Source of the DNA: Klebsormidium nitens
Lineage: Eukaryota > Plantae > Klebsormidiophyceae
Direction of reading: 5' to 3'
Assembly: GCA_000708835.1 (NCBI GenBank)
Contig: DF237169.1
Span: forward strand, 62,001-126,000
DNA: 64,000 nt
The notes under the pieces are model-generated. The model ran no database searches and was not told the origin of the DNA. It worked only from the letters and a program-made list of their open reading frames with translations. Shown here one piece after another: positions 3,601 through 13,064 of the stretch. The first letter of the stretch is position 1, and each line of letters starts with the position of its first letter. Position numbers and translations under genes: made by a program.

Positions 3601-6600
3601 GCAATAAGTGCACTCTCTTGAGAAATTGGAGACTACAAGTGCTTAGCTTCTTGATTTGAACATTCGCGTGCCGTCCTCCCCGGTGCATATTTTCATTCAA
3701 GCAAGATAGGTACTTGTAGGAGCAATTTACGGTCCTCTTTCTGCCGGATCTAAAATTGTAGAACCAGGTGTGCTGCAAGAATCTACCAAAGCCATTTTCA
3801 TCCTCCCGTGAGAGTCTCCAACATCCAAATGCAATCTGGCCCAATCGAATGCGTAGGTTCGAGTCGAAGCGTTTCTGCCGGGATTGTCGGCGGAACGTTC
3901 TGAAGGAGTTCAAGGAGATGAAGGAGCTGCGCAGGGCACGGCGGGAGACGCGCTGCAATGCCTGGTTCTGCATGGCCGACACTACGCTCGCGCACTATGA
4001 GGTACGCAGCCTTGGCACTCCGCCCGCTGTCAAGTGGCCAAGAACTTGTGTCCTGCTTTCCTTCACCTGTTAATATTTTGCTGAGCGAAGGCTGAGCAAA
4101 AATAAGCCTTTCCTCAGCAGAACACGGATGTTTGCTGCAAACCGTTGCCAGAAAAGCGGCCGAGAACAGTAGGAGGTGCGACATGCCGTTCGGGAAGCTT
4201 CCGTAAGCTCCTTGCATTTTGGTTTCACGAGCTTTGTTGACGGCAGAAATGGTCAGCCCCCTCCACAGAGCTCAAAAGGCCCCAGTACAGACGAAGCCGG
4301 AAGATGGATGAGACTATCAACTCGCCGTTTTTGTTTTTTAGTAAGTGGTTGGTACTACTGCCCACAGCAAAATATTTACTTAGTTCCTTCTACTCATCCC
4401 TTGCAGATCACTGACTCCGGCGCGTATGCAAGCTGGGCCGGCAGCTTCGGCGAGGACGCGCGCGAGGAGTACGCGCGCTTCCAATGGGGCCTTGGGACGA
4501 GCGAAGGCAACGACGACCTGTTCCCGTTCGAGGACGTGGGAACCGCCGATTCCGCGACCCTCGGAAATTTAGACTTGGGCGATTTCGTGATGACGCCGTG
4601 TTGGCTGAGCGTGCGGGGCTGGAAGCGAGACGGGCGGTGCGTGGAGCTGTTTGCGAAGGCGTCACCGGTCACCAAGGGGGGCCCGTGCGTGCACCGGCGG
4701 CTGTGGGTTGGGGACGGGTACGTGGCGATCAACAAGGGGGAGAGCATCCAGCGGTTCTTTGAGAAGGCGGAGGAGGCCGACGAGGACGTGAGTGGCGATT
4801 TGCTTTGTCGATATTTCCTCGTCGTTTGGGCGCGCTGTCTTCCTCTGCTTGGATTACGGAGCGAAGCCTGTTTTCTGGAAGAAACGCATCTGGTTCGGAG
4901 GTTCTTATGAGGTTTCTGAGGTGCTGGCATTGTGCAAGCAAACGACGTCCTTGATTTGGGCGCCTGCCCTTGCGGCTGCACCTCCGATCGGACGGCAGGC
5001 AAGCATGACTTCATCTTCGGACGATGCTAACGTCATGCCGTTGCGCATTGTGGCGACGTCACCGGCTTTGTCCTACGCGGACTTCAAAGATCGAGAGAAG
5101 ACAGGAAGAAACGATGGGAGGTGCAGAGGAATGGAAAAACGGAGTCCCAGTAATGAAGTAGCGTTGTCTTTTTCCAGTGGCTGCAAGAGGACGACGAGCT
5201 GAGCGAGAGTGGCGCAGACCTGTTAGACCCGGACGCGCCGCGGCAGCAGAAGCACGCCAAGAGCCCCGAGCTGGCGCGCGACTTTCTGCTGGACGCGGCG
5301 ACGGTCATCTTCAAGGAGCAGGTGCGTGCCACACCTCAGCTGAGCTTCTTTTCTTAGCAATTGCTGACTTTCTCGTGACAACTCGCACAGTACGACTGCT
5401 TCGAGTTCACCTGACAAGTTACCAGTCACGAGAAGGTGGTTAATCTTCAGATGAAAGACAGTTCTTAGAAGCTCACTAGGAAAGTGTTCTCAATGGCCAG
5501 AAAGATCACGCATTACGCCGCTAGCTTGTGTATGTTTTGTAAATGCCGCCTTCCAGTGTCAAGTTTCCAGGCAATGCGGTATATTGTTGCTGTCTGGGTT
5601 TGCAAAACGCCTCAGTCGACTCATAGCGAGCTACATGTCCCGCAGGTTGAGAAGGCGTTTCGGGAGGGGACAGCACGGCAAAACGCGCACTCCATCTTTG
5701 TACACCTTTCGCTGAGCCTCCTAGAGGAGAAGCTCAAGGTGGCCTGTAGGGAGATTGCGGCGCTCCGGAAGCAGGTAAGGAGCCGTGTCTAACTTCGATG
5801 ATCTGCTGAATCCCTTTGAGCGACTTTAGTCTCTGAGAGGCAAGGGGTTTCCTTCTTTTGGGGGCCGTACTTCCTTGACTTCAAAAAGTTTTGAATCTTT
5901 TTCGGTCAACTTACTTCCGGGGCCCTTCCTCAATGGGCATCCTCTTCACAAACAGGCATGCCGCACTAGGAGGAGTCCAGATTTGGAAAACTGCTTTGGC
6001 GATCTGATTTGAAGATGCCTTGCAGGCCTTTAGGAATACCATCAGTTTCTTTGATTCCAAGTAGAGTGCTTGGGCTCCAATTCCGTTGCAGGATCTGCTG
6101 CTGTTGGAGGAGGAAGAGGAAAATTTGGCCATCTGATGTGAAGATGCCTTGCAGGCCTTTAGGAATACCATCAGTTTCTTTGTTTCCAAGTAGAGTGATT
6201 GGGCTCCAATTCCGTTTGCAGGATCTGCTGCTGTTGGAGGAGGAAGAGGAGAAGAAGGAAGAAGAGGAACGGCGGGAGCGCAAGCGGCTCAAGGACCGCG
6301 AGAAGAAGCAGCGCCGCAAGGGCAAGGACAGGGAACAGAAGGACAAGGATAGCGAATCTGTTACGGCGGATGCACAGAGCGAAGATGGGAAGGGCGGTGA
6401 TGACACCCCCCGGGGGGGTGAAGAAACGGGGGCGGAAGAACGGGGACCGGAAAATGCAACCGGGGAGGAGACTGGGAGCCCCGATGTGGAGAGGGACGGG
6501 GAGGCTGAGATTTTGGAGGGGTTGACGGATTTCGAAGAGAAGCCGGTTGCGGCGGATGCGTCTTCCGGGGGCGTGGCGCACAGAGAAGGGGGAGAGTCTG

Positions 6601-8624
6601 GGAGGGGGGCAAAGGTCGAGGAAGTTGCGCCCCGAGGGGGGGTGCTTCTGCAGGGCAAGTCGGGGGGGGTGATTTTGGACCGGCAGGTGAATGCGGTGGG
6701 GAAGAAAGTGGCGGATCTGGAGCTGGAGAAGCGCGGTGGGATGGAGCACGTTGGCAAGGAGAACGGCCGGACAGCTGGCGCAAAGCTGCCGAAGGCAAAG
6801 TCGTCGGCGCCGATCGTGAGCAGTTCCGGGACCGGGGGGGTGAAGATCCTCGTGAGGTCGATTCCGTCCGTTCTAGCGAGCACCAACACGAAAGCGGGGG
6901 CGGGGAAGACAGGGCCCAAGGGGGGAGGAAACGTTTCGGGGGGAAAGGGCACAGGTGTTGCGAAGGGCGCGTCGAGTGGTGCGCCGGCGACGGTTAAGGG
7001 AGGGACGACGGCTGGGGGGGGCGCTGCGAAAGGTGGACTGGGGGGAAAGATAACGGCGCAGCGCATTGTGGTGAGTGCGAATGGGATGAACGGTGTGGCC
7101 AACGGGGCAGCGCCAGGTGGCGCAAAGATAGTGGCTGGTGGGCGGGGGGCAGGTGCGCCAACGCCCATTCTGCGGAGTGTGGTGAATGGCACGACGGGCG
7201 CGTTGCGAAGTGGGGTGATTGGGTCTAGCGGAGTTAACGGGTCGACCCCAGTGGTTAAGAACGGGTCAACGGGGGCCGCTGTATCGGTGGGGAGCGTCTT
7301 GCGGGCCGGCCCGCAAGTGATAAGGGCGACGTCGCTCCCGGGGGGAGCGGTCATCAGCAGTTTGAATGGGGGCGGAGGAGGGGGAACGACGACGATCGTA
7401 ACGCAGGTTGCGCCGGGCGTCACCGTGGCGACAAAGCGGCCGAGCGTTAACCCGAGCGTTAACCCAGGACTTAATCATGCGGGTGCAAACGGAGGGGTAA
7501 AGCTGGGAGCCAATCCGGGGGGAGCGAACGGGCCTGCCGCGAGTGCGGCGGAAGCACCGGCGAAAACGTTGAGCGGGCAAGTGTTGGGTAGTTTGAACGG
7601 GCCAGCGAACGTGAACGGGCAGGCGTCGACGGGTGTGAATGGGCAGGCGTCAACAGGTGTGAATGGGCGAGTTGTTGGGGCGGGTAGCCGGTTGACTACT
7701 TGGGCATCTGGGATTCGCAACCCCGCCCTGTTGAACAACAAGGTCATCCGGGTAGGGGCAGGGCCGGGGGCTTCAGTGGCGGGAAATGTTTTGCTGAGCA
7801 GGGCGAACAGCGCGAGCGCTGCCACGCTTGGGGGGTATGGAGGCCAGGCAAAGAGCCCCCCCGGGACGGCGTCTGGGGTGGCAGCAGCGGCAGTGACGGG
7901 TGCCTCTCCAGGGGGGAGAGTTCAGCCTGTGCCCAGCCCCCCCGCAGTAGTGACGCCGTCGCAGGGGGGTCCGCTCTCTGGGCACAGCTCCCCGTGGCTG
8001 GCAAGCAGGTCGGGGGAGAGTGACGCGCAGGCCCCCACGGAGCCGGCACCGTTTGCATTGGGGCACGCTAGTGTGACCGCGCCCTACCAAATTGGGGGGT
8101 TGCTGAGCAATTTCCAGAGGAGCATGTCTGCAACTGAGGGCGCATTGAGGGGCAGCCCCCCAGGGACGGCCGCCCTGGAGGGAGGAGATCAGTTAGGCGC
8201 CGGCGTGCGTGCAGTTATTGGATCTCTTCCGTTAGATATGGACGGAGGCATGCGGGCCGAGAGCGGGCGGGTGGGGGTTGCGTTTGGCCCGCGGAGCTTG
8301 GAACGAGACGGGGGGCATTGCTCGCCGTCGCTGGGGCCACTCGCGGGGCAGCAGCCGTTTGCGAGCCAGGGCGTCAAAGGGTTGGGAGCTTCGGATGGGA
8401 GGCCGTTGGGGATTGGCGCGAATGGGGTGAAGGGAGGGGCGAACGGGTTTGCCCCGCCGAGTGACGGCCACATATGGGGCCCGGACTTTTCGCTGTTCAG
8501 TTTTGCGGCGCCGTCGGAAAGCAGGGTCGGGGGTCGGGGGGATGGTGGGAAGCGGGAGAACGAGGGGGGACAAGGGGAATACAGCTTGTTTGCTTCGGCC
8601 GGGGGTGGGTTTGGATTCTTCTAG
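698..8624 (+). CDS. Plant 'stress response NST1-like' protein (Arabidopsis AT3G58050/AT2G41960-type, from recalled motifs); 9 predicted exons
   Basis: Predicted exons 698-766, 1716-~2209/2215, 2675-2865, 3857-4001, 4407-4787, 5178-5321, 5646-5774, 6222-8624, with GT/AG ends and mostly consistent phases. Peptides FWKGLSLAQRRALLRVDKATLFETVRKNLYCCKCHGLL, FESKRFCRDCRRNVLKEFKEMKELRR, KHAKSPELARDFLLDAATVIFKEQVEKAFREGTARQNAHSIF, LLEEEEEKKEEEERRERKR and terminal EYSLFASAGGGFGFF* match my recollection of this family. Confidence 0.85.
5995..6250 (+). repeat. Two-copy ~130-bp tandem duplication spanning an intron 3' end, acceptor and exon start
   Basis: tttggc.atctgat.tgaagatgccttgcaggcctttaggaataccatcagtttctttg.ttccaagtagagtg.ttgggctccaattccgtt(t)gcaggatctgctgctgttggaggaggaagagga occurs at ~5995-6120 and ~6124-6250, nearly identical. 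Confidence 0.95.
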
Positions 8625-10041
8625 ATTGGGGAAGCTTGGGTTTTGGTACGAAAGGGTCCTGGTTTTTCTGGATTGAAGTGACGGGATGCACTGGATTTCT
8701 GCTGGTATGGCTTCCTTTTGATTGGAGCCATGGCAAGGACTGCACTGCCCATGTGTATACAAGTGCAAGGATTGACATGCACTGCAAAGACCAGGTTTGG
8801 CGAAGGTTGATATCGATGACTGTGCTCAAACAAAAGAGTTTGAGTTGTAATTCGCTATGCCTTGATTAGTAAGGCAGGAGTTTTGTCTCGCACGGTTTAT
8901 TTCGATCGTGCCACTATAGTGGGATCGAGCACAGAAGAGTCGAGCTTACAACGTTCTTCAGGATATTACATGCATGTATCGGACGTGCATAGCTCAGGCT
9001 TATGTACTCGAAAAACTCAATGATGCTTAAAAGCCTGCACGCCGGGCCCGGCCGCAAGAATGCAACTGACGGTCACTACCATGGTCGACATGTGCTTATT
9101 CAAATCATTCCTGACTTTGATGCTCGATCCCATGCATGTATGGCATGCAGCCATGTGCATCGATCATCATGCATCCGGGTTGCATGAGACGTAGCCTGTA
9201 CTATTTATAACTGGGCTTTATGCATGCAGAATATATCATGAGCTCGAATGCTTCGAGTCGATCGGATCAATGTTGAATTGTTGAATGGTCGGATCGTTCC
9301 GCCCCATCATGTCCCGTGTGCAAGCTAGCAAAAAATAGTAAGGAAGTGTTTATCCGGCCATGATCATGCCAAATTCAGGGTGGGGCCGCACTCAAGTGCA
9401 AAATTGCAGCTCATTGGATGTGCGTAGAGACAGCTAAGCAACGGCGTGTTATGCACCTACCATCCCCACAATCTGTACCACTTCGCCCGAGCCATTTTGC
9501 ACCATGCATTCAATGAGCTCCGAGGCTCGACATTGAATCTGTGAGCAACAAGAGTCCGAGTGACTATACAAAAAGTTGTCTCTGCGATGATGGAGCAGCT
9601 CTGGGCGGACCAAGCTGGCGGCTTCGATGTTGAATCCCTCAGAGCTGGCTGCGTCAGGTACACGAGCTTCTGTTGCACTGAAACCCCTCAGTGGGACTAT
9701 TGGCTCGTGTTCCCGAAAGCAGCATCACACAGTTGAGGTTGTATGCAACAGGATTGACGGCACAGAAAGCAAAACCGTTCTGCTAACATATCCCGATGAA
9801 CTGTGGACCACAACCCCCCACCCTTGTAGGTGCTACGAAAGTGACAAACAACTGGGCTACGGTATACTGATACAAATGCACGGGCCTCTTGAAAGGCCAC
9901 CCCACAGACGACTTTAGCCCTCTTGATCTGATGATCCGGTTTCAGAGCTGAAGACGAACTACCTTTTTGAACTGACTATCTTCGAATCTGTTACCTGGCC
10001 TTCCCGCTGGATTGAACTGACTATCTTCTTTGTCAGGCCAC

Positions 10042-11650
10042 TTATTGGATCACGCAGGCGCAACTCTGGGAGCCCTCACTATCATCATCGTCCCCCTCCG
10101 AGTCGCTCAGCTCAGAGTCGCTGCACAACGGCAAGGTTCTTTATTAGTGCATGTGACCAGGTTAGGGGCATCGTTTTATGCTAACACGAGTGGCAGAAAA
10201 AACACAAAGTCTGCCCTGGGGGGCTGCACAAACACCAAGCTGCACTAGTGTGCGACGTAAAATGATGCATTTTTGAGTGAGATCGACAGTCCCAAGGGCA
10301 CTCGTTCAAAGGAGGAAGTTTGCGCTGCATATGAATCAGTGAAGCTGCTGCAAGTCGGTCCACGAGTGGCCAAGAGTAGAGGCCCAACCACTCAAGCACC
10401 TCAACTTCGTACTTCCCAGAGTGGACTTTCACTCCTACTCTCACTCTCACTCTGCTTGCAAGTTCGGAAGTTTGACGAAATTTATTCTCCAAAAATTGCT
10501 CCACCGTGGAAAGGAAGAACCCCACTGGACTCATCCAGCAAGGAGACATCTGTAGAAAAGGTTGCTTCCATGCGACGATGCAACCTTCCGAACATTCGAC
10601 ATGCACATGTTCCTGCAATTTCCCTTCCCCACTATCAACCATGCAGACGGAGGTGTACGATTGCGGACTGGCACGAAAAATGGGCCCAGCTGGCATATAG
10701 ACAACCCCGTCACATGAGCATCGGCACATTACCCCAGTCAAGGCAGGACTCCGGTAATACTGTGAAGGAGTGCACTTCTGCTGCTCTTCAGAACATGGGG
10801 GAGCTGAGTAGCTTCTGGTCAGAAGTTAAGGGCAAATTCTGGACGGCTCAGAAAGCAATTCTTAAGAAAGAGCCAGACTGCGAAGTTTCCACAACTCATG
10901 AGCTCCACAACCGACTTAAGACGCGATGAGCCAGCGTTTCTGCTCAATTCGCAACAGAATCAAAACCATGCCAATCCCTTAGCAAGGCCATGACACCGCA
11001 GATCAAGCGTCGTCCTGCTCGAAGTCTGTTGCAACCGTCAAGATCACCTGGATTAGGGTTAGGCTTTTGCTCGAAAGACCTCACCTCGCCTCAAACTCCC
11101 GCACAGCAATCAGTGATGACCCATGGAGGTCCGGCCACGAGACCTTCTTCTTCCCCGCCTCTGCAAACCGTACAGCAGCCAAAACACCGGTTTTTGCGCC
11201 TGCGCCGCTGCGCGGCACATTCCGTGCGCCCCCAACCGCTTCCGAAATGTGTCTGGACCCGTTCTCTGCAATTGAGCTGGGACTTGCCAAACCCCCAACC
11301 GGTGCGGGCGGTACTGGCTTGAGGAAAACAGGTTCTGGCAGTGGGGGTAGCTTTCCAGCTCTCGTCGGCGAAGAAGGGCAAGTCTCTGGCGTCTCAAATG
11401 CGAGCCGTGGGGGAGGGGGGTCCCCGTGGGGAACACTGCTAATGATTGGATGGTGCTCTGGAAGCACAGAGGAATCCGGCAACTCATCTTCAATTCCATC
11501 CGGAGTTCCCGGAAGGCCGAGCTCTGTAATTTGGCCGTTGGCCACAAACGCCTTTTGCAGGTGGCCATTCAGAGGGGTTTGAGGGGGCGGACGCTGCACT
11601 ACGACTGACTCATGATCCAGGGTATGTGGTTCGTCCTTGGTCGTGATCAT
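10042..11650 (-). CDS. Pro-rich protein with KKKVSW (RVxF-type) motif, acidic tail and C-terminal CaaX box (CVIQ*)
   Basis: ORF exon 11085-11650 or further upstream ends ...KKKVSWPDLHGSSLIAVREFEA AG|GTGAG. The phase-2 acceptor ttgtgcag|C at 10120 gives S-DSELSDSEGDDDDSEGSQSCACVIQ* (TAA 10042-10044). It resembles the small land-plant family ending 'KV.W.D..G..L..V.EFE.S....C.C.I.'. Start codon uncertain: frame is open to ~11737 and there is a possible acceptor at 11732. Confidence 0.8.
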
Positions 11651-13064
11651 CGGTCTGTGTGTGAGGCCCCTCGGATCTCCCTGCGTGGGCCACAGCGGAC
11701 GAGACACGGGACATGCTTTACAAAAGAGAGTCTGCGGCTAACGGAGTTGTTTATCGCTCTAAAAGAATAGCGTTCCCTACCCGAAAATTGCGCGGCAAAA
11801 GGGGTCTAACCGAGCGCATCTTATTGCGCGGCCTCAGAAGGAGAAACCTTTGAGGTGTGCACTGTCCTTCAAGCTACGGGTCAATGACTCCGGTGGTCAA
11901 TTGTAGCCGGCAAGCGTGCAACATTTGCTTCGGTATTGAAAAAAAACGTTTCAAGCGCCTCGAGAAGCCTTCAAGTTCAATGATATGACCCCAAGCTTTG
12001 CAGAAACGGAGCACTCAGCACACTACACCGTAGTAACAGAGTGCCACATTCCGACCTGCTCCAGGATTGAAACGTGCCACTTCTTTGCGCCTTGCAGTGG
12101 CAGGAAAATGCTGATCTGACTCACGTCGACGACAAGACGGCCATGGGATCATGGAATGATGGCCGGATGCTCATTGCATGATGATTGCTGGTTCACCGTT
12201 GAGATCCCACAAATGCCGCCGGGATCATTTTTCCCGTCGATGAACAAAGTATGGAGTATCGGACGGCTCAAACCATGCCTACTCAAGCATATAACCGCAA
12301 AGAAACTTGCGGCCCAGACATGGTTTCTTTCATCCGCCGATCTACGCAGATTGATGATTGATCCCATGCTTCGGTACGGTGAGTACGGGCTTCATAATGT
12401 GATGTATGTATGTATTTCCAGATACCTGCCTAGTTCAACAGCCTCCTTGACGGAATGCCGCCGGACTAGGATAGATGTACATTATCAGCATCATGCATCG
12501 ACATTGCGTGCGCATTCAAGAATGCTAGTTTCATGGTCCATCGATGTAAGGACATGCATATGAAAGACTGACATGTCAACCCAAGCTACCACAGCTGGGC
12601 GGGGCTGGTAGTATGGTAGTGATTGCATGCGAAGTCCACCTCTGATGCAGCGCCAATGGACTGACCAGCAATTTGACCGACTGAGACCAGCGACACAAGG
12701 GTTCTTACACAGATCAAGGTTGATCAACTAACTTGTGCAACGCTTGCTATATGATAGGAGCTTCAAGCTTCGAATTCACAGCACTTTGGATTCCTTCTTC
12801 ATTGAAACCAACTGACGCTACCGTACATCGACCAACAGACCACATTCGACACAAGTGACTTGCGCTGCTTCTCAAAACTCTCTTTACATGCTATGCATCC
12901 AATTTAAAGGAACTTGGATCCTGCACCTCGTCGAACAGATTCACTTGGCAGGCCCGAGAGACAAACGTGGAGCGGACGGAACAATACCAAAGATGTTACA
13001 TAACCCCCGTCCCGAGACTTAAGAAAAGTACTACCGTACGGTCTCCATAGTGCCGTGTGCGATG

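Follow-up and report, generated by a model that had tools for sequence, protein, structure and literature searches.

Does a short, proline-rich protein of the streptophyte alga Klebsormidium nitens bring protein phosphatase 1 (PP1) to membranes? The question is raised by a 64,000-nucleotide stretch of contig DF237169.1 (GenBank assembly GCA_000708835.1, positions 62,001 to 126,000 of the forward strand), called the window below and numbered from its first letter. A reading of the letters alone, the original prediction, had pointed there to a lipid-anchored PP1 adaptor with an RVxF-type docking motif and a CaaX box. PP1 owes its specificity to hundreds of mostly disordered partners. To our knowledge, very few of these are known in plants and algae. 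The gene in question lies on the minus strand and consists of two exons encoding 214 residues (window translation and database match). Its spliced product is 100% identical to NCBI KFL_002200110 of K. nitens (P0001), which is annotated as "hypothetical protein" and supplied the sequence of the spliced protein for our analyses. The two best-conserved parts of the protein resemble a PP1 docking site and a farnesyl anchor, so KFL_002200110 is a credible candidate phosphatase-targeting subunit. We regard it as somewhat probable that the protein is a regulatory or targeting subunit of PP1, tethered to a membrane by a lipid anchor. We infer PP1 binding, lipidation, the target membrane and the choice between inhibition and targeting alike.

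Gene structure and relatives

The gene is real and is expressed in K. nitens. Transcript contigs from four public runs, belonging to four studies, were aligned to 9700..11900, and the junction of 10120 to 11085 is present in a contig of all four runs, with exactly 964 bases skipped. At its ends the skipped segment reads CT..AC on the plus strand and hence GT..AG in the direction of the gene, on the minus strand, with the donor GT at 11084 and the acceptor AG ending at 10121. Exon 1 closes with ...AGKKKVSWPDLHGSSLIAVREFEA at its 3' end, and exon 2 reads (S)DSELSDSEGDDDDSEGSQSCACVIQ*, the stop codon being TAA. The depth of the spliced contigs (218-258, 114, 44 and 13) is about 8-13 times that of the intron-bearing contigs in the same runs (20, 7, 3-5 and 0). 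The contigs span about 9575 to about 12110 and are unbroken over 11085..11900; the mRNA is about 1.5 kb, with untranslated regions (UTRs) of about 450 bases on either side, the contigs leaving the exact transcript ends unfixed. The same exon join occurs in K. subtile, in the product of a Trinity transcript (P0002, 220 aa), and in a third lineage (P0008, 222 aa, on a 1444-base contig from a metagenome project). The sequence and the 11085->10120 junction are therefore as first described, and the exon that ends in CVIQ is joined to the open reading frame (ORF) not only in transcripts of K. nitens but also in two further lineages. An Rfam search of 9000..12600 returned no RNA gene, the intron included. 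Intron-bearing contigs (10121-11084), which in three of the four runs reach about one tenth of the depth of the spliced contigs, could represent unspliced precursor, intron retention or DNA carry-over.

Word searches and a profile search place the relatives of KFL_002200110 in four lineages only, all Klebsormidium-like: K. nitens itself, K. subtile, a lineage from JGI metagenomes (P0003, P0007-P0009; genomic locus L001) and a lineage from ENA metagenomes (P0004; genomic locus L002). P0003 and P0004 are exon-1 products that continue into the intron and hence end in ...EFEAR*. In both L001 and L002 the downstream exon that follows an AG acceptor encodes an acidic, serine-rich run ending in SCSCVIQ*, and the intron interrupts the same codon position, with lengths of 1811 and 784 bases. 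A word search with exon 1 gave Klebsormidium-type matches only, and one with residues 158-214 gave 8 candidates and 4 hits, none outside the KFL_002200110 family. The profile search of 1.84 billion representative proteins recovered only the family's own three clusters and two spurious matches; its profile covered only the 188 positions of exon 1, and a relative sharing the 23-residue block alone would miss the E-value cut. The two spurious matches (P0005 and P0006) proved on inspection to be long repetitive proteins and were rejected as relatives. Pfam assigned no family to the products of exon 1 and exon 2 (E up to 10), and phmmer found no match to residues 150-214 among solved structures (E up to 10). 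The family is small and, within the reach of HMMER, confined to Klebsormidium-like algae. The searches matched Klebsormidium-like sequences only, and the streptophyte-wide family that had been envisaged is therefore not supported.

Two stretches of the protein, GKKKVSWPDLHGS(S/A)L(I/T)AVREFEA and SC(A/S)CVIQ*, are almost invariant across the lineages, and six of the seven positions of the tail S-C-(A/S)-C-V-I-Q do not vary. Between the window and L001, 14 of the 23 codons of the first block differ and all 14 changes are synonymous; between the window and L002, the block carries 10 synonymous and 2 non-synonymous codon changes. Synonymous change is near saturation between the window and its relatives, and in the tail, too, synonymous differences between lineages affect the codons for Cys, Val and Gln. 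The protein sequence of block and tail is thus under strong purifying selection. The two had been described as the only conserved-looking parts of the protein: they are the best conserved, but they are not alone, as several islands in the N-terminal region are conserved too. One of these islands, residues 82-85 (11396-11407), is a second RVxF-like site, with the canonical R-V-A-F in both metagenome lineages and R-L-A-F in K. nitens and K. subtile. The protein is rich in proline, as noted at the outset (13.6% of residues). AlphaFold2 with the family alignment gives a mean predicted local distance difference test (pLDDT) score of 52, a predicted template modelling score (pTM) of 0.11 and no secondary structure. 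On this model, KFL_002200110 is best described as a disordered protein carrying short linear motifs.

The candidate PP1-docking module

The block contains KKVSW (residues 168-172), which lies within the disordered region and in all four lineages matches both the loose RVxF definition, [RK]-x(0,1)-[VI]-{P}-[FW], and the strict one, [HKR][ACHKMNQRSTV]V[CHKNQRST][FW]. Its initial assignment to the PP1 docking consensus is borne out by both patterns. V170 and W172 are invariant in all relatives, despite an overall identity of 44-46% to the two metagenome lineages (alignment) and the near-saturated synonymous change.

The resemblance extends beyond the core motif. In the crystal structure of PP1 with a peptide of PTG, a glycogen-targeting subunit of animals, V85, F87 and L95 fill a first groove on the phosphatase. 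A second groove takes up H99 (Lys in GM and GL) together with F101; the flat surface separating the two grooves is covered by T96-V100, and R261 of PP1 is paired with D89 (PMC9582199). PTG residues 83-101 align with the block without gaps. V85, F87, L95, H99 and F101 correspond to V170, W172, L180, R184 and F186, all invariant in the four lineages, D89 corresponds to D174, and T96-V100 to I181-E185. The original remark that the L..V..F spacing recalls extended RVxF-PhiPhi segments holds because the block matches the PP1-bound PTG peptide without gaps. In the same comparison, S171 occupies the position of a serine in GM and GL, where phosphorylation of the serine inside the RVxF motif releases PP1 (PMC6737228, PMC9582199).

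A complex of the block with PP1 was predicted from residues 150-214 and a 323-residue PP1 chain of the green lineage (L021:739-1707:-). The chain comes from complete ORFs on metagenome contigs that matched a degenerate nucleotide pattern encoding APNYCGEFDNAG, a peptide specific to PP1; among solved structures it matches the PP1 chain of Chlamydomonas best (E 1.8e-190) and mammalian PP1 isoforms next. The complex scored 0.93 in three runs, versus 0.01 for the best of three controls, and both control types lay at 0.00-0.01. Between runs, at least 52% of contacts coincide, and the partner pLDDT is at least 57. Confident contacts with PP1 are predicted for G166, K168-P173 and S178-S189, and within the block only K167 and D174-G177 are outside the predicted interface. 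We mapped the contacted PP1 residues to human numbering by an offset of +3 with a residue-by-residue check. They are the equivalents of human D166, I169, D242, L243, R261, L289-P298, R74 and Y78, the surface that PTG uses. V170 and W172 are predicted to contact the equivalents of I169, D242, L243, L289, M290 and C291, and L180-F186 those of F293-P298, R74 and Y78. The proposed partnership with PP1 is thus predicted in silico, with V170 and W172 placed in the RVxF groove.

The scan with APNYCGEFDNAG matched at least 119 metagenome loci (L003-L121), at least 22 of which hold complete PP1 ORFs of 298-339 aa. R74, I169, D242, R261, L289, F293 and P298 (human PP1-alpha numbering), which belong to the RVxF groove and the second groove, are invariant in 19 aligned PP1 ORFs among the matches listed.

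A structural search in the Atlas with the docking region gave weak leads. The ten nearest neighbours of residues 163-205 include clusters of PPP1R3/CBM21, TFIIS-N (PNUTS-like) and FHA (NIPP1-like) proteins, all with template modelling (TM) scores below 0.5; the Atlas feature search gave scores of 0.85-0.86, below the meaningful level. Among the weak structural neighbours of residues 163-206 are also two streptophyte clusters of hypothetical proteins, one of 206 aa with 52 members and one named 'F12G12.17 protein' of 231 aa with 105 members. These two could be motif-level counterparts in land plants. The literature search returned no text on F12G12.17 and none pairing KVSW with protein phosphatase 1.

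The candidate lipid anchor, known regulators and rival explanations

CVIQ stands at the exact C-terminus in all lineages. C211-V-I-Q214 has its cysteine fourth from the end, an aliphatic a2 residue and an X that favours farnesyltransferase, and a farnesyl-type CaaX box arises at the end of only 0.05% of shuffles of KFL_002200110. In assays with recombinant Arabidopsis farnesyltransferase, GFP-BD-CVIQ was the best substrate (relative kcat/Km 1.0; CVIM 0.60, CVII 0.21, CVIL 0.06), while geranylgeranyltransferase I used it poorly (0.07), as described by Andrews et al. 2010 (PMC3017772). Both this assay and the conservation of the tail agree with the designation of CVIQ as a farnesylation-type box. 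Between the docking module and the tail lies the acidic, serine-rich stretch noted at the outset (S189-S208), which carries S-x-x-(D/E) sites of the CK2 type; its sequence varies in L001 and L002, but its acidic and serine character is kept. C209, two residues upstream of C211, is invariant. In proteins that pair a farnesyl with a palmitoyl group, a cysteine at this distance is the usual palmitate site.

On these elements we base a model of the protein's action. Residues 168-186 would fold onto PP1 as two short strands, like the N-terminal peptide of the animal glycogen-targeting subunits, with V170 and W172, together with L180, in the RVxF groove, I181-V183 running along the last PP1 strand, and R184 and F186 in the second groove. 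C211 of CVIQ would be farnesylated, followed by trimming and methylation, and C209 might accept palmitate. As the anchor would be only 25 residues away from the docking module, PP1 would be held near the membrane. Judging from motif form only, binding could plausibly be switched by phosphorylation at S171 in KKKVSW and in the run of acidic residues and serines that follows F186. The conserved short motifs in the N-terminal 150 residues (PGTP, of the form P-x-T-P, HPIxSSVP, RxAF, SPxK/R) may recruit substrates or other partners or act as substrates, and a conserved ORF that overlaps the start codon from upstream may limit translation.

The docking layout closely resembles that of the PPP1R3 proteins GM, GL and PTG. 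KFL_002200110 shares their gap-free, 19-residue arrangement with basic residues before V-x-(F/W) (PMC9582199), an Asp two residues beyond the motif, a Leu that lies 8 residues beyond it and returns to the first groove, and, at distances of 12 and 14 residues, a basic residue or His and a Phe in the second groove; with GM and GL it also shares a serine, preceded by basic residues, as the x of RVxF. However, it has Trp in place of Phe and a CaaX tail in place of a polysaccharide-binding domain, and neither CBM21 (Pfam, E up to 10) nor any other folded domain was found. As the defining CBM21 domain is absent, KFL_002200110 is not a member of PPP1R3, and since no homology could be detected outside the short module, a shared origin cannot be asserted.

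Animals already provide examples of prenylated PP1 regulators. MYPT3 (PPP1R16A) and TIMAP (PPP1R16B) are CaaX-prenylated, membrane-associated proteins (PMC6737228) that combine an RVxF-type docking site with a CaaX box at the extreme C-terminus, the logic proposed for KFL_002200110. In contrast to the algal protein, they possess ankyrin repeats and the MYPT N-terminal architecture; KFL_002200110 is about one third of their size, fully disordered and free of Pfam domains. Membership is ruled out by the lack of ankyrin repeats (Pfam, AlphaFold2), so the likeness is one of analogy.

The plant PP1 (TOPP) regulators Inhibitor-3/Ypi1, Inhibitor-2 and SBG1 are, like KFL_002200110, short and disordered, and they bind PP1 via RVxF, although a CaaX box is reported for none of them. 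Inhibitor-3, too, has the form K-K-V-x-W, followed by cysteines and an acidic run. KFL_002200110 gave no match to the PPI_Ypi1 profile (Pfam, E up to 10), which sets membership of the Inhibitor-3/Ypi1 family aside. SBG1, a recently found TOPP inhibitor of 129 aa (PMC13652734), uses SILK in addition to RVxF; compared by description only, its family was set aside because KFL_002200110 lacks SILK and differs in size. A search of full-text literature found no plant paper that unites RVxF, TOPP and prenylation.

Several points weigh against a membrane-tethered PP1 subunit. The support for PP1 binding and for prenylation is wholly computational, the modelled PP1 is a green-lineage metagenome sequence rather than that of K. 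nitens, and the presence of PP1 and farnesyltransferase in K. nitens is assumed. A score of 0.93 is reached by 51 of 78 solved complexes and by 2 of 108 mismatched pairs, a calibration that does not cover disordered chains or peptides, and the score may reflect the model's memory of many solved PP1-RVxF complexes. We therefore read it as a sign that the block resembles an RVxF-phi-phi peptide to the model, not as binding. A motif scan of KFL_002200110 found no SILK and no MyPhoNE motif, and loose RVxF matches are common by chance, occurring in 8.4% of shuffles of the protein itself. The farnesyltransferase assay used a polybasic context, while here the tail follows a strongly acidic stretch of 20 residues, and this could make membrane association weaker if C209 carries no palmitate. 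With farnesyl as its only lipid, the protein may therefore associate with membranes no more than weakly, or with endomembranes.

This acidic stretch, which disfavours binding to acidic membranes, also speaks for the most serious rival, in which KFL_002200110 binds PP1 through the same module as a soluble inhibitor or a PP1 substrate and the tail has another purpose. The tail could take part in metal or redox chemistry, act as a degradation signal, or be prenylated for protein contact or for location at endomembranes or the nuclear envelope. The docking evidence is shared equally by this reading and ours; small disordered plant partners of PP1 such as SBG1 are inhibitors (PMC13652734), and in vitro even TIMAP and MYPT3 tend towards inhibition of PP1 (PMC6737228). 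We nevertheless consider this rival unlikely, if a genuine contender, as C-V-I-Q is invariant at the exact C-terminus while its codons change synonymously, CVIQ is the optimal farnesyltransferase substrate among those tested (PMC3017772), and the cysteine two residues upstream is at the usual position for a second lipid.

A further alternative is that the block binds another partner or forms a short folding unit, its likeness to RVxF being coincidental. The frequency of the loose motif in shuffles favours this, as do the lack of matches in solved structures or Pfam and the openness of the complex predictor to motif-memory bias. On the other hand, shuffling yields the strict motif in only 0.8% of cases and the extended one, [RK][RK]V.[FW].D.{5}L..[VIL][RKH].F, in 0 of 200,000, a figure that overstates the surprise because the pattern was written after the match had been seen. 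All five groove-filling positions and the Asp after the motif coincide gap-free with PTG, both control types of the complex test scored near zero, and PPP1R3/CBM21, TFIIS-N and FHA clusters, though weak leads, are among the Atlas neighbours. Coincidence is, in our judgement, rather improbable. That the locus is not a functional protein-coding gene at all, being an annotation artefact or a non-coding transcript, is very improbable: the product lacks a Pfam domain and a fold and the 5' UTR holds four upstream ATGs, but the mRNA is spliced in four studies, the ORF, intron position and start are conserved in four lineages, and the key block shows synonymous-only change.

The lipid-anchored adaptor of the original prediction is thus supported computationally. 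None of the three contrary results that it named (V and W not conserved in homologues, no PP1 binding, judged here in silico, or a CVIQ exon not spliced to the ORF) was found.

The upstream ORF, the neighbourhood and implications

The features of the gene are collected in Table 1. In its 5' UTR, an ORF of 34 codons begins with an ATG at 11714; it is read in a different frame from the main ORF and extends across the start codon of the latter. Its counterparts lie at about 2754-2834 in L001 and about 3961-4035 in L002, and its ATG is 64, 64 and 40 bases upstream of the main start in the three genomic lineages, in the common context AAGCATGT(C/T)CCG. In L002 a length difference of 24 bases leaves the frame unchanged. 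The overlapping ORF suggests translational control of the gene. Three more upstream ATGs, at 12049, 11924 and 11819, bring the number in the 5' UTR to four.

Table 1 Features of the KFL_002200110 gene, in window coordinates
Feature	Position	Strand	Basis or remark
Upstream ORF, 34 codons, in 5' UTR	11610..11714	-	Conserved position in both genomic relatives
Start codon	11650..11648	-	Start position common to relatives (alignment)
Exon 1	11650..11085	-	Residues 1-188 and two 5' bases of the Ser189 codon; translation
P47-G-T-P50 island	11512..11501	-	Invariant columns, alignment
H67-P-I-(I/V)-S-S-V-P74 island	11452..11429	-	Alignment
R82-(L/V)-A-F85 island	11407..11396	-	Alignment
S-P-x-(K/R) island	11371..11360	-	Exactly one site per protein; motif scan
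E106-P-V108 island	11335..11327	-	Alignment
Conserved block G166-A188 (GKKKVSWPDLHGSSLIAVREFEA), candidate PP1-docking module	11087..11155	-	21 of 23 positions invariant in 4 lineages
RVxF core K168-K-V-S-W172	11135..11149	-	Pattern matches; PTG/GM/GL comparison
Second strand of module, L180-F186 (LIAVREF)	11093..11113	-	Gap-free correspondence with PTG; PMC9582199
Intron, 964 bases, GT..AG	11084..10121	-	Joint 11085->10120 in transcript contigs
Exon 2	10120..10042	-	Third base of the Ser189 codon, then residues 190-214 and the stop
Acidic serine-rich linker S189-S208, CK2-type S-x-x-(D/E) sites	10063..10120	-	Two 5' Ser189 bases in exon 1, 11086..11085
Tail C209-A-C211-V-I-Q214, CaaX box CVIQ and Cys two upstream	10045..10062	-	SC(A/S)CVIQ* in all lineages
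Stop TAA	10044..10042	-	

Elsewhere in the window, an open frame of 871 codons runs from 6009 to 8624 on the plus strand, in a stretch with 63% G+C and a strong GC skew of 0.32. Pfam gave no match for the long neighbouring ORFs, this frame included, which could encode a low-complexity protein or be an artefact of base composition.

KFL_002200110 is probably an unannotated, lineage-specific addition to the known class of RVxF-type PP1-interacting proteins, and as this is a prediction on one lineage-specific protein of a well-known class, its weight is moderate. A bolder reading, which we hold tentatively and with some doubt, is that it is the first lipid-anchored PP1 targeting subunit yet described for the green lineage, a fold-less adaptor with a module of the glycogen-subunit type wired to a farnesyl, perhaps also palmitoyl, anchor and phospho-controlled at S171 and in the linker. 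If this is true, the extended docking module of the animal glycogen-targeting subunits would be in use outside animals and fungi, and the extended RVxF-phi-phi-Phe module would be ancient or would have arisen twice. Unrecognised counterparts at the level of motifs would then be suggested for land plants as well, and PP1 would have a novel route to membranes in a lineage near the origin of land plants.

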